A stretch of DNA of 64,000 bases from Eutreptiella sp. 'Long Island Sound 2002'. Lineage: Eukaryota > Protista > Euglenida. The position numbers and the translations under genes were made by a program. Each line of letters begins with the position of its first letter. The stretch's first letter is position 1. Below, one piece after another: positions 3,158-46,760 of the stretch. The notes beneath the pieces were generated by a model. It ran no database searches. It saw nothing but the letters and a program-made list of their open reading frames with translations, and was not told where the DNA came from. The DNA lies in contig OZ038378.1 of assembly GCA_964036045.1 (NCBI GenBank), forward strand, positions 195,858,001 to 195,922,000, read 5' to 3'.

Positions 3158-4823
3158 ATGTGGGTGCGGAAGCAAGGCGGTGATGCCGTGTGGCAACACT
3201 TTGCTACTCCGGCAGCCGCGCTCCGCTACATCAAGTCCGAAGGTGCCCCCGCAAATTTGCAGCAAGTGCAAATTGAGCGTGCGGCGAAGAATTCGAAAGC
3301 GCGCGATGGTTTCGAGTTCTCGGTTGAAGCCCCCAAGGCACCACCCAAGCCCGCGCGAACGACAGCCTACACCCCATCGGTCGCCTCGTACGTTGACGTC
3401 CTCAGCTCATCGTACTGTGCGAGTTGCCGCGGCCGGCTATGCGGGGTCACTACTGCATGCTCCCAGTGTCAACGGGGGGTGCATGAGCAGTGCTTCGTTG
3501 TGGTGAAGGGAAACGCCGGACAGGTGGAGGTGGATGAGGAGGGCGAGTCCGGAGATAATCGATGGTGTTTCGCATGTGCATGTCGGGGGTGTGCCAAGCC
3601 TCTAGGGGACACTGACACTCAACAGTGCATGCGATGTAAATGCTATGTGCATGTCACGTGCATTAATGATGGTGCTTGCCTCTCCTGTGCTCGGCCCGCA
3701 CCAGAGCAAGTCGCTGAACCCCGTAGAGAGCAGCGGCCATTCCACACTTCGTGGCAGTCTGGCCGCCCTTGCCTTAAATGCGAAGATGGCATGATGCATT
3801 GTGCGGCATGCCGTGCCTACCCCCAGCTCGGAGCCCAACCTGAGTGGATTTCGGGAATTAAGAATTGCAAATGGGACAAGATTAAAAAGCATCAACAATG
3901 TGGCTGCCATGCTGTTTCTTTGGCTCTGGAATTCTGCTGGTAAGGTGAGGAAGGTGACTCACACCCTCCCGCTTCAGACAAGGCAAGCTATTCGGGCGCT
4001 CTTCCGCCTTGTGTATCGTGCCGTGAAACGGCGCGGTATGCTTCGCGATGTGGCTGGGGACGTTGAAGCCGATGAATTGAATGGTGCAAGCGTCATCAAG
4101 ACACATCGATGCCATCCGTCCGCCATTGAAATTCTGGAGCATGTTGCTGCTGATGTGCGCACGGAGGAGGCCAAACCCCTCTTCCAAGCCCCATATTTTG
4201 CTCTCACTTCGGACAGTTGCACCGATCGGTCAACAAAGAAAGAAGAGATGCTGTATGTCCAATATCCCCTCCCCAATCATGTAGTGACACACTTTTTTTC
4301 ACTTCAACCATTGGAGGGGGGGGACGCAAAGTCGATTCTGAGAGCCTACAAGGCAACATTTGAGGAAGCCGCCATCCCTTTGGAGGTTTGGGTCCGTCGG
4401 CTTGTTTGGCTTTGCACGGATGGGGCAAATGTCATGGTAGGAACAACTTCTGGCTTGGTCGGCCTCCTCCGTGCGCTGCAGCAAGAGGTAACAGGGCATG
4501 CTTACTTTGTAGCCATGCATGCCAGCTGCCATGGGGCAGATTTGGCATTCAAGGATGCATTGAAGGAGGCCCATGTGTTTCTGGACGTGCTCAGCGAGGG
4601 CTTGCAACAGTTGGCTGCATACTACAACTCTTCCCCTGCGCGTTTGAAGGGGTTGCGGGAGTTCGCTTCAGAACTAGGGACCGCTGTTTTGAAGTTTGGT
4701 AGATTGCAAGACCGGCGCTGGGCAGCCTTCGCATACGGTGCACTGCGAAGCATGCGCAGGAGTTACCCGGTGGTGGTTTGTGCACTTCATGCAAAGAGGC
4801 CTAGAGATCATGTAGTCTACTAA
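3158..4823 (+). pseudogene. hAT transposase with N-terminal tandem PHD fingers and TTF-type zinc finger; frameshifted near 3930 and C-terminally truncated
   Basis: ORF 3158-3943 has two C4HC3 patterns plus RPFxxSW..C..CR..W..G..KH..C..H. ORF 3801-4823 has hAT core motifs FALTSDSCTD, LCTDGANVMVG, HASCHGADLA and RRWA. There is no hAT dimerisation domain before the stop. Confidence 0.85.
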
Positions 4824-6780
4824 TTTACACCATTTCTTGTGAATTTACGCCACTTTTCTTGGGAATTTACGCCACTTTTCTTGGGAATTTACGCCGTGTG
4901 GGGAAAAATTTACACCCATTTACACAACCTGGTGGCCGGGGGCCGAAACGAGTGTAAACCCCCGTAAATTACCGGCTTGGTGTCATCCATGACCAATGGG
5001 ATCGGTGATTAGTTGGCATTGTGCCCATGCATTGTGCCTATAAGACATGGCAATGTGCCCAAGGAGTTGGAAAGTTAAGGCCATGGTGTGTTTTGACTTC
5101 ATTTTTACCCCAAATGGGCAATGCATCAACACAACAATCCAATTACAGGACTCCAGAAGGGCTTGCACAAAGGGCCTATTAGGCAATGCACCCACGGAGC
5201 CGAGAGTTGCGCTCATGGAACTGGGCATTGCGCCCAAGGCCGCAAGTGTTGAGGAGAGTGACCAATACCTTGTGACCAGCGTGTAGAGGGACTAACAACT
5301 CGCAGGCTGAACGGCCACTCATTGATACAGTAGTTAGGCTGACTAGTCACTCGGGACTAGTGGGTCAATGACCAACACATAGCAGATTCAGTAACACAAA
5401 GCAAGTTGAGTGACTAGCGATTTGAACGGCACACACCATGACGAGGTTTATTGCCACCAATGACCGGTGCCTAGTGACGAGTGACCAGTGGGCATAGTGC
5501 CGATCAACTCGCAAGATCACTGACCTGTAGTTTGGTCAAGAGTAGTGTGACCAGGGTGACCAGTTGGTAGAGTGAATTGTGCTCAATGACTAATGAGTGG
5601 TGGGTGACGAACCACTAGCCAAATCGTTGTGAGCAATTTGATTAGTGCATGGCCGACCAAAAATCAGAGTAGTCAACAACCAGAGGTTCGATGACCACTA
5701 GTAGGAACAGTGAACAGCGGCGGTGAAAGCGGTGGCTTCTGTAAAAACATATTAAGGATGGCATGACGCCATCAGGGTCCAGGATGCTAGATCATATTAT
5801 TGAGGGACACCACATTGGTCAGCGGCATCACACCTTTTACAGAACTAACTGCCATTCTTTTTTTAAAACAAAAACCAATGGTCCTCAAAGGGCCAGCCCA
5901 TTTTTCAAATGAACACCCACATCCCCGGTTCAAGGGTCAGTGGGTTGGCCGGCAGAGGTTAGCTCAGAGGAGAGACAAAGCAATGGTAGAGAAAAAAATG
6001 AACATGGGTGGCATCACAGCAAGCAAACGCCCCATTCCCATACCTGGGGGTGAAGGTGAATAGTGGGGATGCTCGGTGGGCTGGTAACTGCTGGGGCCGA
6101 AACCCAGTCATGCATCAAGGGAAGCAACAAGGAGCAAGGAGTGAACAGGGGGGGGGGAGGACAGGCACACGTGTCAGAGCACTGCAGGGTGGCATTCCAC
6201 TCCCATAGGGAAAAAATAGGAAAATGGGGAGCCATCATACCTCGTCTGCCTTTATCCCCCGCCCCCCAGTGTCCCGGGCTGCATGTTTGGCTGCAAGAAC
6301 GTCGCTATTTTTGCACCAACCATTGGCAGGTTGGACCAACCGCCATTCTGTGTGTGTTTGCATGTGCGTGCGTGTGTGCGCACGCGCATCTGCACTCTCC
6401 TTGCGCTGCCCTACTCCGCGCACACTGTGCAGGCATACCTGGTTCCCATTGATCCCCATTGCTCTTTCCAGTCAGTGGCCCCTGGTGATGTTGCCCAGGA
6501 GCCTGCTGACACAAGCAAGCATGCATGCATGACCTTGCAGCACCAGTACAGAGTGCACAACTCCCTCACAGAGCAACTGACAACCTCACAGGGCATAGTG
6601 CATGCTATGATGCTGTGGTCAGGGGGGGGAGGGGTGACTTCCTAGGCCCAAAGCAGCACCCTGCGGCCCCTGTGCCTTTGTCCAACTATATCAACCACGT
6701 TCCACGTTCCACATTCCCCCTTTGTGCTACTTCGAAACCCCATAACCCCACTCCCCCCTCCACATACGCCACATGCGCAC

Positions 6781-10074: not shown

Positions 10075-10615
10075 CCCTCGAGTTGGGGATATAGGCACCC
10101 ACACTTCGGTGTGGCCCTTCGGGTTGGAGATATGGACTCCCACGATTCGGTGTGGCCTTTTTGAATTGGGGATACGGACTGCCACATTTCAGGGTTGCCT
10201 CTTCAAGTTGGGGATATGGGCTCCCACGCTTCGGTGTGGCCCCTCGAGCTATTGCTATGGAGTCCCACGCTTCAGTGTGGCTTTTCGAGTTGGAGACATG
10301 CATTCCCACACTTCGGTGTGGCTTCTCAGGTTGAGGATATGGACTCGCACGCTTTGGTATGGCCCGTTGAGTTGGGTATATGGACTCCCACACTTCGGTA
10401 TGGCCCTTCAGGTATGGACTCCTACGCTTCTGTGTGTCCACTGGATTTGAGGATATGGTTTCACGTGTTTTGGTGTGGCCCCTCGAGTAGGGGATGTGCA
10501 CTCCCACAATTTGGTACGGCCATTCCAGTTGGAGATATGGACTCCGGCGCTTTGGTGTGGTTTTCTAGTTGGGGATATGGATTCCCACACTTCGGTATGG
10601 TCCCTCAAGTTGGGG
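10075..10615. repeat. ~41-bp degenerate minisatellite (~13 units), consensus GAGTTGGGGATATGGACTCCCACACTTCGGTGTGGCCCCTC
   Basis: Head-to-tail units with no unique spacers. Each unit contains a CCACAC-TTCG-GTGTGG hairpin or a variant. Confidence 0.9.
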
Positions 10616-11899
10616 AAAATATTTTTTGAGATCTGAAACTATTTTTTTAGATGTGCTAAAAAATAATAGAATTTCTGAAGAAAAAAAAATATCCAAAAAA
10701 AAAGTGTCAAAACGGACTACATTCTAGATGGCCCTCTGAAAAATAACCCGCTGCAAATCTAAAAAAAGAAAAAAACCAACGTTTCTAGAATAGATTTCGG
10801 GATCTACGAAAAAACACAAGTTCCAAAAAAAATAATCCGCATCTAAAAAATAAAATAGCGGATAACGCTACCCCAACGTCCCTGCATTGCTTCTACAGGG
10901 AACATGCAATAGAAACCACCAATTCACAGTGTTCGTTGCATCTAGGCACAACATGACACCCAGCAGGACACTACTGCTAACAAGATTGCCTGATGCTAGA
11001 TGCAGATTCTGAACGTGCTGTTGCAGTACACTTTACATTTTGTTTTGCTGATGGATAATGCAACCCACTTGATGGCGTAGGAACCTGCCACTGTGCAACT
11101 GATGCACAACACGCCTTCGTTGTGGACAAAAGGCTAGAGTGCCACGGATTTTTGGACATGACCCAAACAAATACAAAACGAGCATCCCTCCCTGTGTACA
11201 CCTTGGTCTGCCTATGTTGACCCACCATCTGAAGACATTTGAAAGAGCAACACTTGAGCATGAAGTTATGGACAAAATTGTGCACCCACTGACTTTTTAG
11301 GGGCAAAACCACTCGTCTTTGTGCAACGAAAAAAGCTTCTGAACAAAGTCTGAGCAAGGAATGTAGAATTTGGGACTGACTGCGCAGACCGCGAAAGCCG
11401 CAAAAAATGAGCATTTGATGCACGAATTGATGTGTTGGGATGCAGCGTTGTAGAGAGTTGATCAGTATGGCTGTTAGACACTGCAGCATAGGCACAGGGG
11501 TGGCACATTGTAATGCAGAAGAAATGAGCAAAAAAAGCTTGGCTCAATCACTCTACACCTGGGTATACTGCTCAGCAGTTCAGCGTAGGGAGGTTTTTGG
11601 GTCAGTAGCTTCGTGGTCACACTAAGGATACAAAAGGGCCTCCGATGCAGTATTGCAACTTGGAATGCTATGAAAAGCAGTAAGGGACACATTTGTAATA
11701 GAATGGGAACCGGGGTTCTTTTCTGAATACCACTTGATCGTGCACTCAGAGCCCTCCACTGCGAGCACCTTACTCCAATGCAAATAACCCTAGAAATTGC
11801 GCCCTTGGCCACTGGCCAAGGTGGCTAGGTACCCTACGTTGAAACATTCGGATAGTATCTATGATCCTTTGCCATGAATTCTCTACATAGGTCCCCTTG

Positions 11900-12369: not shown

Positions 12370-13664
12370 TTGGACCCCATACTGGTCGAGGAGGTCGAAT
12401 GCGAGAACAATGGCTACACCCTGGATACCCCAAGGGATCGACTCCGGCCCCGAGACATGGTGGAGACTACTCTTGGCGGAGACGAGTACGTTGTGTCATA
12501 CGCTGCAGCCCCCGTCACCGTCTGCAATGTACCTAATCCTGACGTAGTCTCAAAATGTGGGCTATCTGAGCTACCCAGATCAATACACTCTGATGACGAA
12601 AACGACCGCGACGCCTTCTTTGTCCAGACTTGTGTGAAAGAAGTACAGAACGCCGACTACGCTACGCCAGAGAAACCTCTGTTCTCCATGAGGAGAGAGG
12701 AGCCCCTGGATGAGGAGCTGGACCACCGATCTAGGCTGAGAGAGTACCTAGACTCTAAGAGGAGAGTCGTGGAGAAGAGGCTATGCTACGCTAAACCTTC
12801 CCGCAGCTCCCATTCGCTGAAGCAAAGACCGAAGGAACATATTTCTCAAATCAAGGAGGACCTTGAGATTACCACCTGGCAACGTGAGGTGGACTTGAAA
12901 CTCATAAAGAGCGTAATGGTGCCCATGTGAATACCTCTGAAGAAGAAGAGCTCTCAGAGGAATGTATATGCGAACCCCCTTGAGCATGTCTATGCTGTAC
13001 CACACCACCAAAGACGGTCGAGCGGGACCTACTCCATGCCTATTAAGGGCCTAAGGACCGAGCCAAGGACGCTGAGCCGATTGAGGCCCACCTCCCCGCT
13101 TTCATACACCAAGGGGCAAGCAACTTACGCTGTGATAAGGACCGGGAAGACAAGATCAAGCCCCTACACCCAAGGGCATAGAAGCTGATCACGACGTATC
13201 TGGGGGTGTTCGGGGAAGTACCTCCTCCAGCTTCCTGTGATAAGCTGATCCAGATGGACCTCAAGCTGAAGCCTCGGTTCGTGACGCATATGATACATCA
13301 GAGGCCCTACCTAGCTCATAAAGAGCCGGCTTATGAAATGGAACGTCAGATACAAGAATTTAGGATGCCGGCCTGGTCGTGGAGTATAACGATGGGGACT
13401 ATCCCCAATACTGCAGCCCCTGTTTCTTGATGGCTAGGCGTGGGTCTTTAGCCAAATGGCTGGTAGTGGACTATGCAAAGCTGAACGAGAAAAGGTTGAA
13501 CCACTCCGGGTCTATTCCGAATATGGAGTCAACCTTGGAAAAGATAGCCCCTTGTTGCTACAAGGCGAAGATGGACAAGAGGAGTGGGTTCTGCAAGGTG
13601 GACCTAACGCGCAACGCCCAGCAGCTGCTAGCGTTCATTACCTCTCAGGGGAGGGTGTTCAAGT
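12370..13664 (+). pseudogene. gypsy pol, linker and RT N-terminal part
   Basis: ORFs 12370-12930, 13206-13430 and 13379-13669. They end at the insertion TSD in ..GRVFK. Confidence 0.85.
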
Positions 13665-14163
13665 CTTAGGCAGCTCAAGTTGCATGGTCAAAATGCGCCC
13701 AAAACTGCCTCTCCACGGCACTGCGAAAAAATAGTCCTTTTGGGGGGGACCTAAAACACAAGAACCAAAAATCCTGTGAAAAGCAATTAACTGGTCCATT
13801 TTCCTTTATTTTCAACAAAACCGACTGCCCGGAAAAATGATTTATTTCCACCAAAATGAGGTCCTTTTTGGGAAAACCACGACTTTTTGTTTTCTATACC
13901 ACTTATGCTTTGCAATAAAAACACCCATGAGCTTTCAATCTTTTGGAAAACGAGTTTTCGAAAACCATGTTGCACGCTGCACGACAAGAAGCATTTTTTG
14001 GCACCCCTTCTTTGCGCGAGGCCTCGCGCAAACACCAACACAACAGCGCAATAAAATGCATCACGGAGAAAAATGTGCCGCACAAGGTGACAGCATAAAG
14101 GTCGTCGAAGAAGAATGCATAGCGCGAGCCCTCGCGCATAATATATCAGACCAAGCGAAGAAA

Positions 14164-16945
14164 TTACTTTTTCTTCGGAACAGTTTGCATCTTAGAACGC
14201 AATGCCTTAGCAACGGACATCTTACCCTTAGGCGGTGGCTTTGCGGGCTCGCTTCTTGGTTGGGACTGACGGGCTAGCTGCTTGAATGGAGCTCGGGCCC
14301 CGGTTTCCTCGGACCTCGGCTTCGCTGCCACTTTCTTCGGTGCCTTGCCCTGGGAGACCTGCGCTTCCTCCTCCTCTTCTTCCTCGCTCTCCTCCTCTTC
14401 ATCCCCATCGCTCTCGTATGATTCTGCACCGGTAACCAACTTCGCTGCCTGAGGCTTGGAGGCAGTCTTCTTCTTCTTGGGGGCTGTTTCCCCACCAGTA
14501 GACTTCCGCTTTGCAGGGGCCAGTGCTTCTGCAGCTTGACCTTTCTCAACAGTCTCTTCCTCCTTCAGCGACAACGCATCAGAACCCACCTTGTCATCGC
14601 GAACCCAAAGGGGAATACCACGGTTTGACCAATTGGCCTGCTGGTCCCAATCACCAAACGCGTCCAGTTTCGACCCTTGTGTCAATACGTGGTTCAACTG
14701 AGTCTGCACTCTGTTGACCCAATTGGAGAGATTGTCGGAGGTAACACCAAGAAGGTACATGCGAGAATCGGGCTCGATGGACGCGATCTTGCACACATCA
14801 GATCCGGCTGATGATCAATGAACACAAACGCAGGCTTGAAGCTCTTATCCTGCTTCAGGTAAAAGAGGTGAGTGTCGAAATACCACATAACCGTCGTTAT
14901 CGGAAGGTGACCGCCACATTCAACAGGATCCATCTCCTCTACTTGAGTAGGTCCAAACGTCACATAATTCGGAATCTGCAATGAGGGAGAAGTTATTGCG
15001 CGAGGCCTCGCGCAAAGAGCGGATGTAATGAGGGAATTATACCTTTCTCGACCAGCTATCCGGTGACGAAATCAGCAACCAGCGAACGTCAAACGTTGTA
15101 GGATCCCCTGCAGGCTTCGGTTTGACTGGACAACTGAAGATCGGAAGACGCAACATGTTAGCCATGCGCGGCGCGTTGAAATCATCGTTGAGACGCCTAT
15201 CTGTTTCCGTCTCCAGCACGTCGAACATGTTGTCAACAACAGTTTGAGAGCCGCAGATAAGGGTATCGGCACGCGCCATCTCTTCATACAGCCAGGCTAG
15301 GCACATCATCCCAGGAGCAAGATGTTCAAATATGTCGCCGTTGATGACAATCAGGTTCTTGTCAATCTCAATAGACCGCCTCGGGGGATCGTGGGCCAAC
15401 GCTGCAATTCGGGTCGCCTTAATTGTGATAGTTTGACTTGACAGTAATGGATCCTGCTGTTCCACTGTCTTGAAGTCACCAGTAACGCCAGCAGCTGGGG
15501 GGACCACACGGCTCTTGGTAGGCTCTTGACCCAGGAGTTTTTGGACGTTGAGGATTTTCAGGGAGGCGGGTTTGCCTTTCTCTGCCACCTGCCACAGTGG
15601 TGCGCGAATCATGGATTTCCATGCCGGCCATGGACCGCGACTTTTGCCTTCAGGTTCCCGCCAATAGCCCCATGTACCAAGAGTCACCTTCAGGGCAGGC
15701 CTTCCAAGTGCAGCAACCTCTTTGCGGGTCCGCATGTCTTTGGCTAAAGAACAGAAATGGAGAAAGTGCGGCGCACCAATGCAGAAGCGGAACCCACGTC
15801 GCGTCGATGGTACACACCTTTCTCAGGTTGAACGTACTGGCCGTTGTGCGGGTGGTCCAGATGCATTGAGACCCACTGGTCAAGGATGATGTCATCAAAC
15901 GAATCTGGCAAGGATTTAAGGGTTGTTTTTTCTTCCTGCATCACTTCTACCACTTTCCTGTAGAACTCCGGCAACAGGATCCCGTCCAGTTTCTTCAGCG
16001 CGTTCTTCGTGACTTTCTCCCCTTTGTCGTGGAACTTCTGCAGACCTTTCACGGCTTCTGGACCAGCATAGTAGGCAAACATCATAAAATCTCTCCACAA
16101 TTTATACGTTTTGTCCTGAAAGTGACAAGGTTATGCGCGAGGCCTCGCGCAAGGAACAGCATCGAAACAACGATTAATGAACATACTAATTGACCAGGCT
16201 GCTTCAGTTCAGCGGTTGAAACCAGGGCACTCATCTCCACAGCATCCACAATGGCGATCTTGAGATTGCTGTACGTGTCAGCCAGGCCTCGCCGCCGCTG
16301 ATCTTCAACACACTGCCTCATACAGCGGTATTGGCTCAACGTCTTGTGCGCTTCCTTGTGCTTGTCCCGCCAGCTTTGCACGGAAGGCCCACGGTGTCGT
16401 AGGCTTCAGAATATCGGCGATGCATGTAGTATGCCACTGCTGCAGATCCAGACACGCTGTGCGTCGCTTCTCCCGAATCTTCGCAATCGCTTTCACGCTG
16501 TGTTGTCCAGATACACATCAATAATCGCCATCTGCAAATATGAGACACGTCTATGCGTGAGGGCTCGCGCAACGAGAAGAGCGAACAGTCGGTTGGCAAC
16601 ATACTATTATGTTCCCAGAGAACGACGTGTAATGGGCCTGTTGGCGGTGCTACTTCGAGTGACTCAATACGCTTCTGCAGTAACTTCGTATCTTTCCGTC
16701 TAACTAAGTCTAATCTGCCCCTTTGCCTTCTCCTGGTCGATTCTCACGTTGTCCAGCTCAACCTCCACCTGCCTCCCATCCGGTTTCAGGTGGTCCTCGA
16801 TGTCAGTACCCAAGGTTAAGCCAGGATCTGGTTTTTCCGTCTTCTTACGCCCCTTCTTTGGTGTTCCAGCCTCCGATCCTGAGGTCCCAGGGTCATAGTC
16901 GGTATCTTCTCGTTCCTCGGCTGTTTTTCTGGCGGGGCTTGCCAT
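14164..16945 (-). pseudogene. Spliced ~800-900-aa protein with N-terminal ParB/sulfiredoxin-fold domain and acidic/Lys-rich C-terminal tail; several frameshifts and one stop
   Basis: Start MASPARK at 16945. Region reads V.LDNVRID..GQIR..DTKLLQKRIESL..PPTGPLHVVLWEHN|NGDY*CVSGQHSVKAIAKIRE..ILKP..RAKLAGQAQ. GT-AG introns at 16532-16604, 16116-16186 and 14976-15042. The last two join ORFs 16082-16381/15744-16100 and 15037-15735/14694-14981 exactly in frame (QL|DKTYKLW; SRK|IPNY). Confidence 0.75.
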
Positions 16946-18841
16946 TCTGCGATAAGGAGAAAGCGTGTATTGAAGGAAACATAACATTGAAAAGGGTTAA
17001 AATCGTCGTCAATAATGCATATGTGAGGCGCTTTTAGCGAATACGAGTACAGTATGGTTGAGAATGCAAAACTGAAGGGGCTCGGCACTGTTTTTGACTG
17101 TCAACCTTGCGCAAGGCCTCGCGCAAGAGAGGGCGTGTACTAACCTGTTGTTTCATGCTGTTTGCGCGAGGCCTCGCGCATCACTGCATGTTCTCCAATC
17201 TTCTTCGAACGTTTCGCAGCGTGTCGGCCTCTCTCTGTTCCTCCAACACACTGCGTTGGGGGATCAGCTCCGACAGTTTTCGCTTAAAACCAGCCTTAAG
17301 CGGCCCCTGTTGCGTTAGCACCAACAACACAGACACAAGGACTTGTTTGTAGTGGTTAGAACCCTTTGGAATTAGAAGAGACGGTGGAAAGTTAGGTACA
17401 CCCCTGCGCGGCCAATGCGCCTGAATTGTACAAGTAGGCTCAGCACACCACCTAACCCAAGGCACATATACACGTTGTGCGTTAAAGTAAGCAGTTAACC
17501 GCTGACGCAGGGAATTGACAAAGGAATTGGGGATTTTGCAGATGTTCACCCTGTGACCTTCTTTGCGGATAGTGATGAGATGATACAGATCGTCAACATT
17601 TTCAATGGTTACTGCACCTCTGTTTTGGCCCTTCTTTGTCACAAGGCTGGAAAGCAGACTTTCACAAAACTCCTCGGCAAAAGCCTGTCCAGGCATGGCT
17701 GTGTGCCATGCAGTGTGGCACAATAGCGCAGTTGCAACAGTGCGTTCGTATTTTAAAAGTGTGTCCCCCATGTTCAAACGGTCTAACGGACACATAACAA
17801 TCTGCAATCCCTCAGAAGCAAAAACACCCGTGTTGGCCGTCTCCCCGGCCCAATTGCACTGTCTAACGAGGTGACCTAGGTATAGTAACATAGGACAGTA
17901 TTGTGTTAACAGAACCTGTATGGCCTTACACACAGCGTAACGGAGGCGTCCTTGCTGATTTACAGGACGTGCCAGCCCAAGGGAATGTGGGGGCCCATAC
18001 CCAACAGCAGTGCGCCAACAGTTATCTCCATTGTGATCAGCTTGGGAAAACAGGGGACTGTGTCACCGCTGCGCAACAAACCTTTACGGAAGAAAGTCAC
18101 GATCGGCCAAAATGAGCGAAATGTTTGTGTAACGCAAAACTTGTACACGTGCCAGAAACCATACAATATAGGGTGTGACCGCAAGAAAAGCCGGACATTC
18201 CAACCCGTTGTTTTTTCACCGTACATCATCTTACAAATGCGGTAATGGATGTTCTCATCACATAAAACAGGCACAACTGGTCGAGTGTGCTGCGCCAATT
18301 CCCTAGTGAATTGCAATAGATTAAGCAGCGAGACGTTGCCGCTCACCTTTTCTTTAGTTAGACAAAGGGGTTGCCAATGTGGTCTCTTGGCAGGTACAGG
18401 GCGAATAATGTCAAGCGGCGCCCTAATGTTTCGAACAACAGGTCGCGTGCTTGCAAATCCTAGATCACGCAGGATACGTGCAAATGTTCCCTCGGTGTTC
18501 CCCAGCATGTGTGCAACAACAGGAACACGCCGTTCAAGCTCTTCCAGGCTAGGATGACCATGCCAGTAGCGCGATGCATCCTTCAGTAGCAGCACAGCCA
18601 ACGCTGTTGCGTTGAGGCTTTTGTCGTTCTTGTCAGGATTTGTGGTAAACTGTTTGTTGTACCAGTTGTCCATCCGCAACACAACCCACTGTTGGTGTAT
18701 TTTGTTCCATGTAGTCTGTAACCTGACTGCGGCCTTCTCCTTCAGCGAAGGTGCGCTGTATCACGCCAGACCTGACCTTGCTAAAATGCGACGCTGCGCC
18801 CTACTTCCCTCTACCGCCACAACTGACTTTGGTTTTCCCTG

Positions 18842-21800
18842 TGTAAAGGGCAGCTCAGGACAGGACAGGACAAGGTTGATTTCTTCTGTGGACCTCTGCA
18901 GTTGGCAGGGTCAGGATTACAGGAATTATGTTTAAATTTTGTGTGTTGTGCATGACATAGCCCCATATAAGTTATGTGCTGTGGTGCGTCGCAGATGCCG
19001 CTTTTTGGGCACTGCAGGGCACGCGTGCGCACTGATTTGTGCATTGTTTTCTTTCTGAGAAGCACTGATTTTTATTATAAAAAGATCTGATTTTGTAGGA
19101 TTTTAGCATGTTTACAGTGTATGTATTGTGCTGAGCGTCCATTATTGTTTAGGCCATGAAACGGCTTATCTGTTGAATCACTCCGTATCACCAAGTCAAG
19201 ATTGATCAACTCATTTGATTTATTGCGTGCGGCAATTACAAGAAGGGCGTCGTTTCAAGGTTTTCAAAATGGGACTGCAGGAGATTCAAAATGAGAGGTT
19301 TGAAAATTCTGAGTACTGGCCGAAACAAGACTCGGAGGTCTTGAAATATTCAACAGATAATCACGACGTTTCTTTGCCTTTGCCTGTAGCTGCAGATGAG
19401 ATCAATAAGAGTGAGGAGTGCAATCACAGGAGTCTACGGCCCGGCCGAGCCGTCAATCAAGACACCATCAAGGCGCCGTCCAGACCAGCGCCAGCCCCGC
19501 CCAGGACAACACGGCCGCCGAAGCGCCTTTCAAGTGGAGTAACAGAAGTGCCACGATGTGCTGAAGCCGCCGCCATCACAGCAGTGCAACGACTCGTCGC
19601 AGAGGAAGAACGAATAAGGCAAAGTCTCAGGTATGAGCAACAAGTCATCTGCGCGAAGAGGTACGCGAACTTTGGCCACGTTTTTCAAAAGCTCTATTGT
19701 CGGTTGTTCCAGCCTTCGTTGAATTCGGGGCAGACAAGTACGCCGCTGAACGAACTGAAGGAACCACGGGAGCGCTCATTGAAGGAGCTGGCGGAAACCA
19801 GCAAGGCAACGCCAAAGAAGAACACCGCAAAATCGAATGCGCCGCCGAACAAGAACAAAGCGTCTGAGTCATCAGGTGTGTTGGCGAAGTTGGAGACGTC
19901 GTTGGAAAATTCCTTGAAGCGATCCTTAAGTGACCTCCGACAAGTTGTGGAACTGTTGGGTAACTGTTCGCCCTCTGTGTCCGTCAGAACGAACAAATGG
20001 AACAAGTTCGTCGATAAGCAAGAACCAAGGCCCGTTTCAAGTGTGACGAAGCGCCGGCAGAACGAATCCCAAGTGACTGAGCGCCGAACGGACGAGTTAC
20101 AAGCGAGTTTGGATGATTTTGACGCGTGGACAGTAACTTCGGGAGATCCTGGTGGAGTTCAGCAGCGAAGGAGCTCCACAAATGAGTCGTCGAACGTCGC
20201 GAGGCCCAAACAAAGGGGACAAAGAGCAGGACGTGCTGTGCAGCGGCGCCATGCAGCCGTCAAGCTGCTCGAGCTTTTTGAGACAATGGTGGGACCTAAA
20301 AAGTGGACTTGGCTGTATCAGGGCAAGAGATCCAGTTCACAAGTGGCAGCGTGCCCACCAAGCGAGACGTGGGGCCAAGCTGTACAACCACGAAGATGCA
20401 AGGACACGAATAATCCTTTCTCGTAAGGAGTTGGCGTTGACAGCGCTCAACTTTGACAGCTTTTGGCGCTGCGAGCGCCTTCTTATGCTTTGTGTGAACA
20501 ACTGTGCTTTGCACAGTGTACAGCCTTTTGGGCTGCATATATGCAGGGATCTGATTTAGATTCGCTGGCATGTACATTTTCAGTATGTCAACGAGGTCTT
20601 TTTTGACCTCTTCGTGGGCGCCAAGCGCCTTGTTTGCTGGCACTGACATGTGGCTTTGCTTTCTTTTGCGTTGTAGATGCTATTTTGAATCTGCAATGAG
20701 CAGTGGTGGGGTACACCCTGCTTGACACTTTGAGTGAACTCTGGTTTACTCAGTTTTTTCATTTTTGTTTTGCTGTGCACCTGCCTGCTTGTGAGCAGTG
20801 TGTCTTTTTTTGTTTTTCAACTGCTTCTGTCGTGGAGAAAAAGCAGAGTGGTTTTCTTTTTGGTTTTTCTGCTTTTGTTGGGAAAAAGCAGGGGTTTTGT
20901 TTCAGTATTTTTATACTATGTTTTTCCCGTACCATGAGCACTTCAGGCTGTGTGCCATGAGCACTTATCAGGTTTTACACCCTTTGGAGAGTTTGACTGG
21001 GTATAGGTTGAAGCACCACCGCACCACTCCCTTAGGGCACTGTTTTGTGACAGAAATCCCTTTCAGGAGGGTAAAACTATCTATGGTACCAGTGGTATTC
21101 CACTAGCATGATCTGCACATAGATAGTAGCTGTTTTTACCTGGAATGGGTAGAAATAGCCAGATCACAGACAATAATATCTGTATATTATTGTAGGTTAA
21201 AGCCTGCATGTTTTGCTATTTTTTTTCTCGGGTCAGCAACTCATTTGGGGAGTGCTGAGCCTGGGGGGGGAGTGTAAACATGCAAGGCAGCCTTTTGGGT
21301 GCTTGCGTTTTACACCCACCCAGCTCTGTCTGAGCTTTTCCCACCCCTATGGTAAAACCCTTCGCACCCTTTTGTTTTGGGGTCTCAGCCACACATCAGG
21401 GTATGTGTGGGCTTGGGGGGGGAGTGTAAAGGGCAGCTCAGGACAGGACAGGACAAGGTTGATTTCTTCTGTGGACCTCTGCAGTTGGCAGGGTCAGGAT
21501 TACAGGAATTATGTTTAAATTTTGTGTGTTGTGCATGACATAGCCCCATATAAGTTATGTGCTGTGGTGCGTCGCAGATGCCGCTTTTTGGGCACTGCAG
21601 GGCACGCGTGCGCACTGATTTGTGCATTGTTTTCTTTCTGAGAAGCACTGATTTTTATTATAAAAAGATCTGATTTTGTAGGATTTTAGCATGTTTACAG
21701 TGTATGTATTGTGCTGAGCGTCCATTATTGTTTAGGCCATGAAACGGCTTATCTGTTGAATCACTCCGTATCACCAAGTCAAGATTGATCAACTCATTTG

Positions 21801-21921
21801 ATTTATTGCGTGCGGCAATTACAAGAAGGGCGTCGTTTCAAGGTTTTCAAAATGGGACTGCAGGAGATTCAAAATGAGAGGTTTGAAAATTCTGAGTACT
21901 GGCCGAAACAAGACTCGGAGG
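18842..21921 (+). mobile_element. 3.08-kb non-autonomous element with ~499-bp identical terminal direct repeats, no clear TSD
   Basis: 18841-19339 matches 21424-21922. The repeats begin (G)TGTAAAGGG, and GGGGGGGGAG (PPT-like) precedes the second repeat. The ends lack a terminal CA and share only GT with the target. Confidence 0.85.
19215..20426 (+). CDS. 403-aa uninterrupted ORF (likely start Met ~19270); coiled-coil/low-complexity, possibly gag/ORF1-like
   Basis: Long stop-free ORF inside the direct-repeat element, with helical segments and an RGQRAGRAVQRR basic motif. No recognisable catalytic motif. Confidence 0.5.
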   Translation: MIYCVRQLQEGRRFKVFKMGLQEIQNERFENSEYWPKQDSEVLKYSTDNHDVSLPLPVAADEINKSEECNHRSLRPGRAVNQDTIKAPSRPAPAPPRTTRPPKRLSSGVTEVPRCAEAAAITAVQRLVAEEERIRQSLRYEQQVICAKRYANFGHVFQKLYCRLFQPSLNSGQTSTPLNELKEPRERSLKELAETSKATPKKNTAKSNAPPNKNKASESSGVLAKLETSLENSLKRSLSDLRQVVELLGNCSPSVSVRTNKWNKFVDKQEPRPVSSVTKRRQNESQVTERRTDELQASLDDFDAWTVTSGDPGGVQQRRSSTNESSNVARPKQRGQRAGRAVQRRHAAVKLLELFETMVGPKKWTWLYQGKRSSSQVAACPPSETWGQAVQPRRCKDTNNPFS

Positions 21922-23104
21922 TATGGAACTGCGCGGTGGCGCATCAGCAAATAAAGGCGCCAGGCCTCCTCTATCAAAACACCAACCCATCTCTTGCCTT
22001 CTGCCGCAATCGCCTTTTCAACGCTGCAACGCGTCCGTTCATTTTTGCGCAGACGCAGAAAAAACACAAACAACAATCGCGCGCCCTCGTCCCCATGTTT
22101 TAGCCCTTCCCATAGTTCTTCTGCCGTGTGGTACGGCGGTGCCTCTGAGCAGACATCGCGGAAAACTCCAGATGCTGCGGCCACTGTCTTCTCAAGGTCC
22201 ACCTCTTTTCGCAGGGGCATTGTTGCTGTGAAGAATAATTGCGTACCTGTATCTACGTAAAGATCGCTGTTTGAAAAACTTTATTTGAAACATCAACCTG
22301 TCACACAGTTTTCGCGCGACCAATTCTTCTGTGATTCGCTTGTCGCATGCACCATTTTCGGTTAACTGTAACTGTCTGGTGATCCCACATTTGACTAGTT
22401 AATCCTGATTGCGGTAGCCAGTTGCGGCGCACTACCATCGCTGTTGGGCAGTGAAGCCAGCGGTGACAAGGTATGAAAACTGGAGAGGCCGGCGGGACCT
22501 GTATGGGCGCCCATGCAGCAGCGCCGCATCAAGGGAATGCACATGCTGTGTAGTTGGTGGATCTGTTCCATTTTTGGTTTCTATGAGCGCTTATGAGATC
22601 CATTGCGCGAGGCCTCTCGCAATGATCACCGAAACTTTAATGTTTCTCATGCGCCGTTCCATGCGCAAGGCCTCGCGCTTGAAACTGCAGTTTGTTCCGG
22701 AACATTTATACTTTTCAAGATTCTTGGGTACACCATTGTTGCAGTTTATTCGTTAATAGATCCATCTCTATCACGCAATCCTGATAATGGTACTAAGTTA
22801 CGTGTATAAATACGACAGGGTTCCATTTTTCGACAACCTGTCTAATGCGTCGTGCTGTAGCACATTAATCTGACACAAATGAACGTCTTTGCGCGAGGCC
22901 TCGCGCAAAGAAACGTCACGAAACAATACTTTTCCCTGTCTCGCCCATGGGACACGTCATTCTTATAGAAATATTTATTCCGCCATACTTGTTTGCGACG
23001 GTTTTACAATATCCATCAAAACAACCATTTTTTGATGCCTTTGGAAACCTGTCATTTTCCTACCTTTTCCTTCGTTTTTAACCATGCAACTTGAGCCAGC
23101 TAAG

Positions 23105-24376
23105 CAAGTGGACGGTCATGCCCTTTGGCGTGGCCAAGGCAACCGCTCTTATTCAAGAGCTGATGAACAAGATCCTGCCCATCCTATGTCGAAGACATGT
23201 GGTGCAAGAACTCACATCCCGAAGGGCCCAGATTGAAGCACACATTGATGATGTATGCCTAGGTACAAATACCCACAAGGACCATCTAATCTTTTTTGGA
23301 GCGTTCTTTAATGTCTGCCAAGGTAACCACACAGAACTCAAGCTGGAGAAGTGTGAGTTCATGCCGGAGACTATGCAGTACCTTAGGTGTTGGACCCTTG
23401 CAGCCCTTAAGGCCAAACCCGTGATGGATGCCCAAGTACCACATGAAGACGTCAAGAAAGGACTCCATGAAGTATGTAGCTTCATTGGGGCTTGCAACAT
23501 GTACCATCGCCAAATCAAGCATTGCACCCACGCTAGCGCCATCTTCACGGACGTCATCAAGAACAGATCTACCTGGCGCTTGGGGCCTCAAGAGCAACAA
23601 ACGTTTTACAAAATCAAGGACCAAGTGGCTGACGCTAAGTGCTTGGGCGTGCCTAAAGCACCAGGTGAAATTTTCATGGTGACAGACGTTTGCAACGTGG
23701 GCGGTGGTGGAATGTTGTTCCATTCGCAAGCACTAGAGAAGGAGGAGTGTGACTGGGCCATATCCCAATGAGGTACTGATGGTGTTAACAATGGAATGCA
23801 GAAGCACCGCTGCCCCAAAGACAAATGGGTCCCGGTTCCCTTGGGCCATTAAAACTGGAAGTGGAACTAGGGCAGGGGTGACTGTTCTACCTATTGGCAA
23901 GAATAACTCGCGCGTATGCTGGTGCTATCTTCTCTGTCCCGCCTACTGGGGAGCAACCCTGTGGTTTGGTGATGCGACCAAGAATCGGTACGCAGTTTCC
24001 AAAAGGGACCCCTACCTAAGAAGGCTAAGCTCCGACACTAGTGGACCTACTAGAGCCAACTGCGGCTCTCAGTGCAACATATCCAGGGTGTCAAGAAGAA
24101 ATGTGCCGACTACATAAGCCGCTACAACTTCGATGACATGATTGGTACCAAGTCAGAGAAGCTAGCTAAGTAAGCATTCACCTATATGGATGTACACCTG
24201 GACCTGAAGATGACCATCATCAGACCTCTAGATGGGCTCCGACAAGTTGAGTAATTGAAACAGTTTAAGGATATCTACAAACGCGTAGGGAAACGTCTGG
24301 AGCCTGTCCTAGTCAACCATGAGCAGTGTAAACGAGACAAGACCTACCTGTGGCATAAAGACCGGATAGTCGTGCC
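23105..24376 (+). pseudogene. gypsy pol RT C-terminal part and RNase H
   Basis: KWTVMPFGVA..HIDDVCLG..LKLEKCEF..SFIGACN..VTDVCNVGGGG..WNWKWN. Confidence 0.9.
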
Positions 24377-40845: not shown

Positions 40846-42029
40846 CTGTAGAACCAGAGATGAGAAAAAATGCAGAGGATTGTACAGGGATGTGGAGGCT
40901 ACCCCGGCCGTAGCCTGGCCCCTAGGCGCCCCGGCGTGGTTTTGGTTGTCCGGGGGCTTGACGCAGTGCTCCGGATGGGTATAGTGTGGGGGGGTCCCCC
41001 CCCCTCCTTCCCCCGATGCCGGTTGCGATTACGATTGCTCAGCCTGGCTGTACCAGTGCGCAGCATGCATGTATGGCCACCCGGCCCTCCCTGGGAACAT
41101 ATGACACAGGACAGCAGCCCATGAAGACAGTTTTAAGTCACGTATAAACATGTCTTCACACATTGAGCTTAAATCCTTTGCTGTTCAGAAGGGTCTGTGG
41201 CTGAACTGTCTGAGCTGTCTGCGCTGGAACTGCAACTACTGCTGGACATTCAAGACGACGCCTCCAGCGCACATACCTACAAATGAAAAAAGGTGAGCAA
41301 AAAGAATCGTAATTGTCATTTCGTCATCACAGTCTCCTGGCCCAGGAGCCCCCCGCCTACCCCCTCTCCGATCTTGGTAATGTCGTCACTATTCAATCCA
41401 GCCCCGGAGCATCGGAGGTTAGGCCTGGGTAGCCCACAATCGACTTCATATCCGCAGTGATCTCTGACGCTACGCGCTTGCAGGGCAACAGACCTAAAGG
41501 GGGGTTTCATGAGTGGCTGTAAAGGCGGTAGACGGCGGTTGAGATGCAATATCTGGCGGGTACAACCCCGTTGGAGGGCCGTGCAGGGCGGACAGAAGCG
41601 GTTGGCGCGGCTGCCCGTCACCCCAGCGAACAGGGCAAGCGCAAGGCTGGGGGGGGGGGGTGTCTCGCAAACGGCTGTTTGGATCCGATTTGTTCCAAAA
41701 CTTTGCATCAAGCTCTGCTTTGGGTGGGTTGGTGGGTGGCCATATCGTATCCGGAGGATTGGGGCCTGGCGACGCACTCCCTGGGGCACTCACTGGGGCG
41801 TGGTGAGTCGCAAACTGCACCCTCACCAGCATCAGGATGCTTGTCCCACAGCCAAGATTGATCAGCGGGAGACAAGGAATCCCAGAGGACCACCGATGTA
41901 CCTTGTTGTGGGCAGTAAAAACACTTCATCTGAACATTGAAAAAAAAAGGAAGCATGAATTCTCCAGCGACCCAAATTAAATGATGCACATCTCAGAGCA
42001 TGTTCGGCGTCAATGGTCACGCCAGACCC

Positions 42030-42292
42030 AGGGCTGTCCTTAAGGGGAAACAAAAGGGGGTTCGTAACACCAAAAGAACGTTCACGGGGACACTCTCTGC
42101 TTCATGGTCAAGACCCGGGTCAGACACAATACCACAGGAACAATATTGAACAATGCTTGGCAGTTGGCGGCGGTTGGCGGTTGGCGGTTGGTGGCAGCTG
42201 GCGCTTGGCGGCGGTTGACGGCGGATGCGTTGGGGGCTGTCCTTAAGGGCTGTCCATAACGGAAAAAAATTGCGGTTCTTAAGGACAGCCCT
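42030..42292. mobile_element. MITE with 15-bp TIR AGGGCTGTCCTTAAG and internal GGCGGTT repeats, copy 1
   Basis: TIR at 42030-42044 / 42278-42292. Second copy at 48661-48947. Confidence 0.7.
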
Positions 42293-45200
42293 TTGGTCGG
42301 GCCTAGCCCGACTAACTTGGGGCGTGGCCGAAGGACAAGGGGGTCAAATCTGCCAACCTGTTGCCACCCTCCTCATGCCGCTGTTGGTGCCTTGTCTTCA
42401 CACCCTGCCTCAGCCACATGTCCCCTCAGCAGTCAGGCAGAAGGAGCAGCTGCAACCTTCGGCCTTGAACCGCTCGGCATACGCATCCCATGAGTCCGCG
42501 GCTGCAAGAGGCGCTCCACTCTCCACCTCCGAGTGGACTGGCTGCAGTGCACATGGTGGACCGTCCTGTGTGAACACATATGTGCCATGCAATGCAGGCC
42601 ATTGCACCAGTTGGCAGACTGAGGCGGGGTCAATGGTGTACCGGACCCATCACCCGGGGGTACTGAGGGTACGGAGGGCAAACGGGGTAGCTGCACTGGC
42701 GGGTAGGGCCCCAAGGGAAGGGCTAGAGGCCACAACACACGGTTATCTGCATTGTACCATCGCAGACCCAATCAGCTCGAAATTGCAAACATCCAAAAGA
42801 TCTTGGACTTTTGACCGAAAAAGGGGGGGGGGGGGAGAGGGTGATAGTCTTCCCCTTTTTTTCCCCGACCCCCAGGCCCCCACCCCTCCCCCACCCCACC
42901 CAAAAAGATGACGCAGCCCACGTGCGTGGCCCCCTCCACAGCTACCATTCGCGTGCGCAGCTGCCAGCTCCAGCCCACGAGCACAATGCCCTGCAACTGC
43001 CCATGTGCATGGCTCCCAGTAGCAGCTCCTGTGCACAGGTCCATGCTGCTGTCCACGTGCACGGGTCCCTGCTGCGACCCGTGTGTACAGCTCCGTGATG
43101 CCGAGCTCCCAGCTACAGCCCGCGTGCGCAGCTCCCTCCTGCTATCCCCCGTCCCCTGTGCTGACATGCGCAGGGGTGGAGCATCCATCCCTCAGCCTTG
43201 TGCTGGCGTTCACGGGGGCAGAGACCCATCCCTCCGTCCTACAGTCCCCTTCCCTTAGCTAACGGGAGTGGGGATGGGGACTCTTGTCCCCTGCGATGTG
43301 CTGACGTGCACTGGGACGGAGACTCCTACCCTTTGCCTTGTGCTGACGTGCACTGGGGGCAGATACCCTAGTGCCCTGCCCTATGCCGGCATGCACAGGG
43401 CGGGAGGCACCGGCCCCCGCTTAGTGTTGATGTGTGCAGTGATGGAGGCACCATACCTCTACCCTCTACAAGCGTTCATAGGGTTGGAGACTCCGTACCT
43501 TTGCCATGTACTGCAATGCACAGGGGCGGAGACTCCACACCTTAGCCATGAGCTGACGTGCACAGAGGTGGAGACTCCATCCCTCTACCCTATGTTGACC
43601 GGCATGGCGGGCACTCCATCCCTGCATCCCTGTTGTAGGGCATATGTGCGCAGGGGTGGGGTGCCCTTCCCTCCGCCCTGTGCTAGTGTGCACATGGGTA
43701 GGGAACCCTTCCCTAACCCCCTGTGCCGAGGTGCGAATGGGTGGGGTACCCAGGTCAGGTCACATCAGGTAGCACCGTATCCATCGTCCGTTGGTCCGTC
43801 TGGAGCCGTCCACCGGCAGAACGCCTGGCCGTGACATACACCCACTCCGAAGAGAACACTCCTGGGAGAGGGGGCTGTAGTACCATGCATGGTACACAGA
43901 TAAATTGTGCCCCATGCCAAGCAAGGCTGTCAAGAGGGGGGCTGTAGTACCACGCATGGTACAGAGATGAAGACCCGCCTGCAGGGGGAGAGCAGCCCTC
44001 TCCCATGATTGGCACCGCGCGCGCACGAGGCACACTTGTTGAGGCAGTGGTGCGTCTGCCCCTCACAGGCCGCATCTGTGACCCAGGGGGGTGCCCGGGG
44101 TGGGTGGTGGCGGCATCGGCCGGCCTGAGGGTGGGGTACCCCTCCCTCTGCCCTATGCTTGTGTGCACGGGGGTGGAGAACCTTACCAACCACCCTCGTG
44201 CGAGGACACCGTCCCTCCACCCTGTGCTGGAGTGCACAGGGTTGGGAAACACTTCCTTCTACCCACAAGCCCGGGTGCACCACAGACTGTCCCTCTGCCT
44301 TGTGCTGGCATGCGCAGCACAAGGCACTACCCTTGCGCCAAGGTGCACAGCGGAGGGGCGCCCTTCCCTCCACCCTATGCTGGCAGGGGCAGTGCAAGGA
44401 AGGAATTCATTTTAAGGAGCAATAGTCCATAGGATCATCGCCATATCTACACCGAACCTGACATCAGCGATAGGCCATTAAGGCAGTTACATTGGCTGGA
44501 CCCTGTATGACAAGAGACTCCATCCGAGGGCAATTGGTGTTTGCTCTGTGGACGCTCGGCCATGAACCACCTGGGCCTCTATAGACCTATCGACCTGCAT
44601 CATAGAGTACAGTATTGTGGAGTGTGTGGGGGAGGGCTCAAGATCCGAGCCCCTCGCATAGCCTAGCAGCTCCACATAGCTGCGAACCCACCTTGTAGGC
44701 GGGTCTTCCAACGTGGTTAGTTCCTCATGGCAGATCCCTGTCTCCGCCACTGGGACTTCAAATTCAGCGAGGTCATTGGACCCAGAGCCAGGGGCCACAA
44801 AATCAACCATCATAGGTTCAGTCCCGGGCGGGCCCCGGGGATTTGACCACCCCGGCATCGCTTCTAAGGGTACCGCATATTCGGATAAGTCGGCATGCTC
44901 CGCATTTGGCTGCGTGGCCCTTGAGGGGAAGACCCGAGGCTAGGGGGAGAGGGGGGCGCGGGGAGCGGCGGCAGCCACAAAAATGGGCGCAAGTTGCACC
45001 AGCAGCAGGGTATGCTGCAAGGAGTCCTGAGTATCACCTTCTCCATCACCGCATGTGCATGCAGGCGACCAGTCAATCATCCGAGACGACCTCTTAGAGT
45101 GCCAGCTGGATGTGACCGCCGGTGACCATCGCATGATGTGGGCCATGGGCGATAGGTGGGGTGAAGAGCCCCGTCTCAGCGGCCCTTGAATCCCTTTAGG

Positions 45201-46641: not shown

Positions 46642-46760
46642 CTGATTTGGCAGGTCAGCAAGGTGGAGATTCTCCGTGTCCTGCTCTGACCTGGTGGGGC
46701 CTCCATCTCTGAGCCCAAGTGAGCCCCCAATCTTAGTGCAAGTCTCTGATTCAATGAGGT
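46642..46760 (-). CDS. Candidate 119-nt exon (DLIESETCTKIGGSLGLRDGGPTRSEQDTENLHLADLPNQ); identical copy at 52561-52679
   Basis: TGACAG| acceptor, open frame, and it lies in the most conserved block of the duplication. The donor GTTGCT is weak. Confidence 0.3.

Follow-up and report, generated by a model that had tools for sequence, protein, structure and literature searches.

A compact two-gene DNA transposon of a Eutreptiella genome carries a gene for a predicted ParB/Srx-fold protein together with an array of palindromes

Introduction

What is the role of a gene with a ParB-like product in a eukaryotic DNA transposon that also carries ten copies of one palindrome? The question is raised by a locus of the euglenid Eutreptiella sp. 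'Long Island Sound 2002' (assembly GCA_964036045.1, contig OZ038378.1, forward strand, positions 195,858,001 to 195,922,000; this whole stretch of 64,000 nucleotides is called the window below), in which a sequence-only reading had placed a transposon at 13665-23104 and had proposed that the protein of its second gene binds the palindromes of its own element. Our analysis describes the locus as a dead copy of a 6.4-kb two-gene transposon, whose palindromes are candidate sites of an element-encoded dimer, with the ParB-fold protein as the best candidate binder. Resting on analogy for its last step, this reading appears to us evenly poised between right and wrong, and it is weighed below against its rivals.

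Results

A family of cut-and-paste transposons present in hundreds of copies

The 9.44-kb span (13665-23104) was correctly given in the sequence-only reading; it includes a nested insertion of 3.08 kb, so that the 9.44 kb does not hold as the size of the element, the family unit being 6.4 kb. The two 29-nt inverted ends of the window copy are 86% complementary, the inverted ends of the family measure 29-31 nt and begin with CTTAGG, and three copies are flanked by 5-bp duplications (CAAGT in the window, CAAGA at locus L001, TCACA at locus L131). In-silico excision of the element together with one CAAGT brought back a reverse-transcriptase frame (GRVFK-WTVMPFG, the hyphen marking the junction), and the open reading frame (ORF) downstream of the insertion matched Pfam RVT_1 and RT_RNaseH_2. 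Thus, the element is inserted in a Gypsy-type retrotransposon, and the boundaries first proposed for it were exact. The inverted ends, the fixed-length duplication, the reconstructed empty site and the hundreds of copies identify the family as a cut-and-paste DNA transposon of the terminal inverted repeat (TIR) type, as the earlier claim of a eukaryotic DNA transposon had it. A target preference for CAAG was considered and dropped, because the L131 duplication reads TCACA.

A 232-aa query from a gene-2 exon retrieved more than 278 ORF variants of 70-95% identity, all of them from ENA assemblies, on more than 100 contigs of up to 7.8 Mb. Searches with gene 1 gave the same pattern (more than 280 reading-frame variants), and a gene-1 profile search of proteins returned only further copies of the same family. 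Three loci were taken from the long-read metagenome assembly ERZ25074135 (contigs at 32-39x), where the copy number is in the hundreds. Two 6.4-kb copies, L001 and L131, are free of the nested insertion; their gene 1 is intact (661 aa), their inverted ends are those of the window copy, and none of the ten palindromes is missing or displaced. Both genes lie on the minus strand of the window, and gene 1 is followed by gene 2 at L001, L131, L002, L003, L004/L127, L006 and L129, with gene-1 identity down to 28%; this order is kept in at least five lineages. No ParA-type gene was found in this two-gene element, whose ORFs gave no Pfam match of any kind.

The N-terminal part of gene 2 is predicted to adopt a ParB/Srx fold

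Read from L001, gene 2 has four GT-AG introns of 69-76 nt, and its spliced product in intact copies is about 790-835 aa long. The gene-2 peptide quoted in the sequence-only reading is present on the minus strand; what was taken there for a first intron (GQIR..D.KLLQ) proved to be a 10-bp frameshifting insertion of the window copy, at which intact copies read through. Only the N-terminal ~330 residues (fold, helices and exon 3) are conserved across lineages, while the C-terminal 550-600 residues diverge fast; the tail is lysine-rich, then acidic, then lysine-rich again. Exons 4-5 and the C-terminal ORF of L004 gave nothing, or low-complexity matches only, against PDB, and no oxygenase, methylase or other catalytic domain was detected in gene 2 by Pfam and PDB searches of the C-terminal exons. 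Since L001 has TGA (11316-11318) where the window has CGA (14299-14301), 45 codons before the gene-2 end, the basic C-terminal tail may be dispensable, or L001 may also be slightly damaged.

An exhaustive HMMER search with gene-2 exon 2 found 51 relatives, some of which are metagenome ORFs spanning the whole N-terminal region without introns. The family alignment (A2) conserves G-Q-x-R followed by D/E...V..L..S, then PPxxP...W, [S/G]-G-Q-H-x-x-x-A and W..V.AD.LK..TP...R..AG. Using A2, we ran AlphaFold2 on residues 55-235 of the closest intron-less relative (P0231, 37-39% identical to family-A exon 2) and obtained a confident model (pLDDT 88.8, pTM 0.82). Its top 50 Foldseek matches in PDB were all ParB/Srx-fold proteins (best E 5e-4, probability 1.0), including Atu1540, Noc, sulfiredoxin, the ParB proteins of Myxococcus, Bacillus, Caulobacter and pNOB8, KorB, PadC, SbnI and SerK. 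Among viral models (BFVD), 37 matches had E<1e-3, down to 7e-6, and those carrying a name were all ParB/Spo0J, 'ParB/Sulfiredoxin', ParB-like nuclease or DndB-like, including giant-virus DndB-like models.

The BFVD alignments to ParB/Spo0J proteins with a helix-turn-helix domain covered 160-186 columns, for a model of 181 residues (TM 0.53-0.56). KorB in PDB aligned with the model at an rmsd of 4.3. Four helices follow the fold in the model and superpose on the ParB region that holds the helix-turn-helix. The Q-x-R of A2, kept in the members that span this part except for one relative with GQTQ, resembles ParB box I by pattern and position only. At the sequence level, the best resemblance was to sulfiredoxin: in a search of PDB sequences with the A2 profile the top six were sulfiredoxins, aligned on their active-site GGCHR motif within a shared ...PxxVLW...GG(C/Q)H..A pattern, with E of at least 0.16 (0.16-0.45), which is not significant; unlike in sulfiredoxin, the Srx cysteine is not conserved in gene 2. 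Because the model is confident and its top 50 PDB matches are all of the ParB/Srx fold, the claim that the N-terminal ~230 residues of gene 2 form a ParB/Srx fold, with helices behind it as ParB/Spo0J proteins have, is supported at the fold level only, and the fold assigned to this part in the sequence-only reading is borne out by the model of a relative.

The palindromes keep their positions within a family and differ between lineages

With up to two mismatches, GCGCGAGGCCTCGCGC has ten sites in the window, all within 14014-22906, against 0.01 expected by chance. As the sequence-only reading had reported, none lies elsewhere in the 64 kb, and allowing three mismatches added no site. Most copies extend to TT-core-AA, about 20-22 bp. 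All ten positions are common to the three family-A copies. Five sites are subterminal, at 198-484 bp from one end of the element and 349-457 bp from the other; gene-2 introns 1, 2 and 4 carry one site each, and intron 3 carries none. Outside the elements, no palindrome was found in ~54 kb of the window and ~30 kb flanking other copies (~85 kb in all), so that the check for palindromes outside this family left the claim standing. In a scan of JGI metagenomes for the 16-mer, only single occurrences were seen among the matches listed (86 of 120), in a chance-like pattern on contigs of bacterial type. CpG decay was considered as a sign of methylation and rejected, with only a slight excess of CpG transitions and a CpG observed/expected ratio of 0.94.

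The pairing of gene and palindrome recurred in relatives, with a palindrome that differs between lineages, and the co-occurrence for which the sequence-only reading had asked was found. Family A (window, L001 and L131), taken as the reference, has TTGCGCGAGGCCTCGCGCAA at ten sites: three 5' subterminal, two intergenic, three intronic and two 3' subterminal. Family B (L002), whose gene 1 is 46% identical to that of A, has AGTGCGCGAGGCCTCGCGCACT, which keeps the same 16-bp core with different flanks, at eight places equivalent to those in A (three upstream of gene 1, two intergenic, and three in gene-2 introns 2, 3 and 4). Family C (L006, from an NCBI assembly; gene 1 41% identical to A) has CCGCGAGGCCTCGCGG, twice between the genes and once within the gene-1 ORF. 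Family D (L005) consists of a gene-2 relative and fourteen copies of ACTACGCGCGCGTAGT, with no gene 1 on the 4.1-kb contig, and family E (L004/L127; gene 1 28% identical to A) has GAATGAACCGCGGTTCATTC close to both ends, twice upstream of gene 1 and once downstream of gene 2. Contigs like L005 (1-4110), of ~4.1-4.5 kb, occur in several samples, and they may represent a member of the group that is non-autonomous or arranged in another way.

In the spacer between gene 1 and gene 2, the two palindromes, 48-57 bp apart, are all that aligns strongly among families A, B and C. The palindromes had been described as entirely non-coding, which is true of the window copy; since the one at L006 540-562 lies inside the gene-1 frame and is read there as REASR, within a loop of low conservation, coding DNA can carry a site too. 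Every palindrome type is symmetric through its centre (GGCC, CGCG or CCGCGG). The lineage-specific palindromes and the conserved blocks argue for functional, element-specific sites, with a dimeric protein as the expected binder. A protein of two-fold symmetry that recognises DNA seems more likely than an RNA hairpin, because all types are self-complementary through the centre and the loop of a hairpin needs no such complementarity.

In families A and B, a splice-donor-like CAG-GT(T/A)(A/T)GTA lies between the two intergenic palindromes (window 17125-17163; L001 8443-8470), and a CAG acceptor stands one base before the gene-2 start codon (window 16943-16950; L001 8650-8663). From these signals, gene 2 may have an intron in its 5' untranslated region, or both genes may be expressed from one alternatively spliced transcript, as in En/Spm.

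Gene 1 encodes a putative transposase

The intact gene-1 reading frame is L001:6440-8425. An alignment with relatives down to 28% identity (A3) keeps LWxDNxY (D157), DENIHYR, YG(V/F)WHAYKF and PG...EExxExLLSxL (E499/E502), with D295 of DENIHYR and H331 and K334 of YG(V/F)WHAYKF invariant. The AlphaFold model of this protein was poor (pLDDT 53); in it, each of the two aspartates of a conserved D...D...E pattern is immediately preceded by a strand, the glutamates lie on a helix, and the secondary structure could be RNase-H-like. Because these conserved motifs come with inverted ends and target duplications, gene 1 is a probable, though still putative, DDE transposase of an undescribed family. 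Scans of viral and prokaryotic genome collections returned no relative of gene 1.

No Pfam transposase match (hAT dimerisation, MULE, Transposase_21/24, Plavaka, RAG1) was found in the element. Target duplications measure 8 bp in hAT, 3 bp in EnSpm and 9-10 bp in Mutator elements, and known end motifs such as CACTA and CACGGTG are unlike the CTTAGG found here. By profile, duplication length and ends, the element falls outside hAT, Transib, EnSpm/Plavaka and Mutator, and we know of no superfamily whose duplication length and end motif fit a 5-bp duplication with CTTAGG ends.

The window copy is dead

The window copy is 95.9% identical to the intact copy L001, and its description as pseudogenised was confirmed by the nested 3.08-kb insertion, four frameshifting indels and one stop codon. 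In gene 1, the lesions are the nested insertion and a 25-bp deletion near 17985; in gene 2, they are a 10-bp insertion near 16713, a stop codon near 16518 (between DY and C), a 17-bp deletion near 16312 and a 2-bp insertion near 14798.

The nested insertion splits gene 1 and has 500-bp terminal direct repeats (18840-19339 and 21423-21922) that are 100% identical. A 403-aa ORF on its plus strand (19215-20426) begins within the direct repeat and had no match in a Pfam search. A clear target duplication is absent, the empty site at L001 being CCCTG-GTATGG. Overall, the insertion has the appearance of a young LTR-like element that is non-autonomous.

Coordinates of the features of the window copy are collected in Table 1.

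Table 1 Features of the transposon copy in the window (positions in the window; a dot marks features given without strand).
Feature	Position	Strand	Remarks
Target site duplication CAAGT, left copy	13660..13664	.	repeated at right end, 23105-23109
Terminal inverted repeat, end downstream of gene 2	13665..13693	+	29 nt; same ends in L001, L131
Palindrome 1, 3' subterminal	14014..14029	.	perfect; kept in L001 (11582) and L131 (10140)
Palindrome 2, just past gene-2 stop	14122..14137	.	1 mismatch, common to other copies
Gene 2, accessory protein	14164..16945	-	5 exons, broken in window copy; exons from L001
Palindrome 3, gene-2 intron 4	14998..15013	.	perfect
Palindrome 4, gene-2 intron 2	16135..16150	.	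perfect
Predicted ParB/Srx-fold domain and following helical region, gene 2	16187..16770	-	end of exon 1, intron 1, exon 2; GQIR, PPTGPLHVVLW, SGQHS
Palindrome 5, gene-2 intron 1	16555..16570	.	2 mismatches
Palindrome 6, intergenic, gene 1/gene 2	17109..17124	.	
Palindrome 7, directly after gene-1 stop codon	17164..17179	.	perfect
Gene 1, 3' part, putative transposase	17181..18840	-	661 aa when intact; DENIHYR, YGFWHVYKF
Nested insertion, first two thirds	18841..20920	+	foreign to the element
Nested insertion, last third	20921..21920	+	
Gene 1, 5' part	21921..22220	-	start codon at 22220
Palindrome 8, 5' subterminal	22605..22620	.	
Palindrome 9, 5' subterminal	22663..22678	.	
Palindrome 10, 5' subterminal	22891..22906	.	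perfect; ~200 bp from end
Terminal inverted repeat, end upstream of gene 1	23076..23104	-	
Target site duplication CAAGT, right copy	23105..23109	.	

Surroundings of the copies

Elsewhere in the window, an ORF at 3158-3943 weakly matched a C17orf113-type zinc finger (E 7.5e-4, below the Pfam cutoff) and may, from this similarity, be a remnant of another transposon-derived gene. The region 42000-52000 has ~60% G+C, compared with ~50% in the rest, and holds long ORFs without a Pfam match. An Rfam scan of the window found no RNA gene.

The L001 copy is flanked by ORFs (5161-5472 and 15669-17756) that match the C-terminal and Beta-Casp domains of a CPSF73-like host gene, and it probably sits in an intron of that gene. 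At L002, a 1.6-kb insert between genes 1 and 2 (10265-11868), with 77-nt inverted ends that are 97% complementary, is a separate, unrelated small DNA transposon. A search of this family-B copy for the inverted ends of the element itself found none, and the copy is probably truncated on its 3' side.

Discussion

What the palindromes may be for

The palindromes are most likely binding sites of a dimeric protein encoded by the element, and by analogy with ParB-parS, KorB, Noc and the red-algal protein PAG3 (described below), the ParB-fold product of gene 2 is the best candidate binder. A protein bound at many points along the element would label this DNA as the element's own. The bound protein could then join the two ends for transposition, as TnpA does for En/Spm, or it could alternatively recruit or block chromatin and silencing factors. 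The nucleotide gating, coating, synapsis and segregation of circles raised in the sequence-only reading are likewise hypothetical.

Several observations weigh against this reading. None of 24 members of the gene-2 family matched ParBc PF02195, TIGR00180 or the other ParB-type profiles of Pfam and NCBIfam, even at E up to 10. DndB and DGQHR likewise gave no Pfam or NCBIfam match: the conserved GQH recalls DGQHR, but the flanking Asp and Arg are not conserved. The profile-level membership in ParBc, DndB or DGQHR that had been envisaged therefore did not materialise. The arginines of ParB box II (GERR) are absent, with [S/G]-G-Q-H-[S/T/I/L] in their place, and gene 2 had no match to a helix-turn-helix profile, the superposition of helices being no proof of the motif. 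The fold was modelled on the relative P0231 (37-39% identical to exon 2) in place of family A's spliced protein. Moreover, protein divergence does not simply track site divergence, because the gene-2 domains of families D and E are 41-43% identical and their palindromes differ, whereas those of A and B have 38% identity and their palindromes a common core. Gene 1 had no Pfam, NCBIfam or PDB profile or sequence match, and Foldseek with its poor model found nothing significant, Hermes appearing only among the non-significant matches. Finally, the N-terminal region of gene 1 is conserved in A3 and helical in the model, as is typical of transposase DNA-binding domains, and the transposases of hAT, CACTA, Mutator and P elements themselves bind subterminal repeats.

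Because many transposases bind such repeats, the gene-1 protein is a serious rival binder. The palindromes would then be its sites, like the subterminal repeats of hAT, En/Spm, Mutator and P elements, and the ParB/Srx-fold protein would be otherwise employed, as a nucleotide-dependent enzyme, in chromatin or against silencing. This is the most credible of the rivals and, on balance, unlikely. In its favour, half of the ten sites are subterminal, and the ParB/Srx fold includes enzymes that do not bind DNA, such as Srx, SerK and SbnI (PMC12704722). However, the other half are internal (intergenic or in introns), where end-binding does not need them, and the model aligns over its full length with DNA-binding ParB/Spo0J proteins, beyond the ~100-residue Srx core. 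That L005-type contigs retain gene 2 and fourteen palindromes without gene 1 points the same way; this evidence is weak, because non-autonomous elements would keep transposase sites too.

A bolder form of the proposal that gene 2 encodes the binder, which we consider improbable, is that the family represents an undescribed TIR superfamily with a working nuclear system of the ParB-parS type, in which a nucleotide-gated dimer would load at lineage-specific palindromes, occupy the whole element, and synapse its ends or shield it from silencing.

Distinctly less probable is that the palindromes act as RNA hairpins in transcripts of the element, controlling splicing or the ratio of products, or feeding small RNAs. 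Primary transcripts could include all ten sites, a site lies near the middle of three of the four gene-2 introns, and the splice-donor-like motif is conserved between the intergenic palindromes. Yet the self-complementarity runs through the centre of the sites, which a loop does not need; what families A, B and C conserve is the sequence itself, beyond its pairing, and compensatory changes are absent; and the introns that bear palindromes differ between families A and B. The least probable explanation, namely that they serve a factor of the host (as transcription-factor sites, or as CpG-rich sites for regulation or insulation) or are small independent mobile palindromes that invaded the element, fits their richness in CpG and GC and the chance singletons of the 16-mer in many bacterial metagenome contigs among the matches listed, but not their complete absence from the ~85 kb of host DNA that surrounds four copies of the element, the positions kept between subfamilies at 46% protein identity, or the possession of its own palindrome by each lineage, which would be unexpected for a conserved host factor.

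Relation to known systems

Gene 2 and its palindromes resemble the bacterial ParB-parS, KorB, Noc and VirB systems in the predicted ParB/Srx fold followed by helices and in a QxR whose pattern recalls box I; as in ParB-parS, there are perfect palindromes of the 16-bp class, several per replicon that encodes the protein. Unlike bacterial ParB, the gene-2 product has no ParA partner, shows GQH[S/T/I/L] for GERR, and continues for ~600 further residues with an acidic/basic tail, and its gene bears introns in a nuclear, eukaryotic setting. Among eukaryotic transposons, TnpA of En/Spm (CACTA) and ORF1 of PIF/Harbinger are second proteins thought to bind repeated subterminal motifs and to help assemble the ends. 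The present element shares with them a second element-encoded protein and repeated short motifs, for which binding is here proposed; in contrast, the folds are unrelated (ORF1 is Myb-like), and the motifs of TnpA and ORF1 are short, asymmetric and confined to the ends.

The sequence-only reading knew of no described transposon system of this kind, and this novelty claim is overstated: a similar pairing of gene and repeats was reported in 2025 in red-algal transposons. PAG3 of the red-algal Plavaka (EnSpm/CACTA) elements has a remote ParB-like N-terminus (best HHpred match 7BNR_B, E 0.29; bioRxiv 10.1101/2025.02.11.637652; Petroll et al. 2025, Curr Biol 2025). The protein has no Pfam domain detected, carries a putative 2-oxoglutarate (2OG) oxygenase domain and has tandem inverted-repeat arrays beside its gene, and its authors propose that it binds its own transposon (bioRxiv 10.1101/2025.02.11.637652). 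It is found in Plavaka elements of 17-19 kb that hold two more accessory genes, and also in Zisupton, Mutator and Fanzor-encoding elements (bioRxiv 10.1101/2025.02.11.637652). Gene 2 is likewise a transposon accessory gene whose product has a remote ParB-like N-terminus and no Pfam domain, with inverted repeats in the same element, and 7BNR, matched by PAG3 in HHpred, is also among the Foldseek matches of the P0231 model. The two differ in that a 2OG-oxygenase signal was not detected in the C-terminal exons of gene 2, and in that the ten palindromes are single and dispersed (subterminal, intergenic and intronic) instead of forming tandem arrays beside the gene. Compared by description only, the carriers differ as well, the present one measuring 6.4 kb, with a 5-bp duplication and only two genes, of which gene 1 is unclassified.

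A second precedent is the Ectocarpus element Sola1-1_Ec32, with a ParB-like plus DNA methyltransferase accessory gene whose product is proposed to bind and modify the DNA of its own element (PMC12477816). ParB-methylase accessory genes are reported there for brown, green and red algal transposons (PMC12477816; citing Iyer, Abhiman and Aravind 2011). In Sola1 as in the present element, a eukaryotic DNA transposon has an accessory gene with a ParB-like domain; in Sola1 this is a recognisable ParB-methylase fusion, whereas here no methylase was found and none of the sequence profiles detects the ParB-like domain. Unlike both PAG3 and the ParB-methylase systems, the family described here is divided into several lineages whose palindromes differ.

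The ParB-CTPase fold was surveyed in 2025 with Pfam and TIGR profiles, applied at gathering thresholds; sulfiredoxin emerged as its commonest form in eukaryotes, and transposons are not mentioned (PMC12704722). The gene-2 family is invisible to profiles of the type used in that survey (PMC12704722), and the gene-1 protein may represent a transposase family not covered by current classifications. As the family shows, compact eukaryotic transposons present in high copy number, in several environmental lineages, combine a predicted ParB/Srx-fold protein with an array of perfect palindromes. Together with PAG3, they make self-recognition of transposons through a ParB-like module directly testable, and cross-specificity can be tested with the matched proteins and 16-22-bp sites of at least four lineages. 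If the bolder proposal of a working nuclear ParB-parS-type system were true, ParB-like site-specific loading would, with red-algal PAG3, be recurrent in eukaryotic mobile DNA, beyond plasmids and phages.

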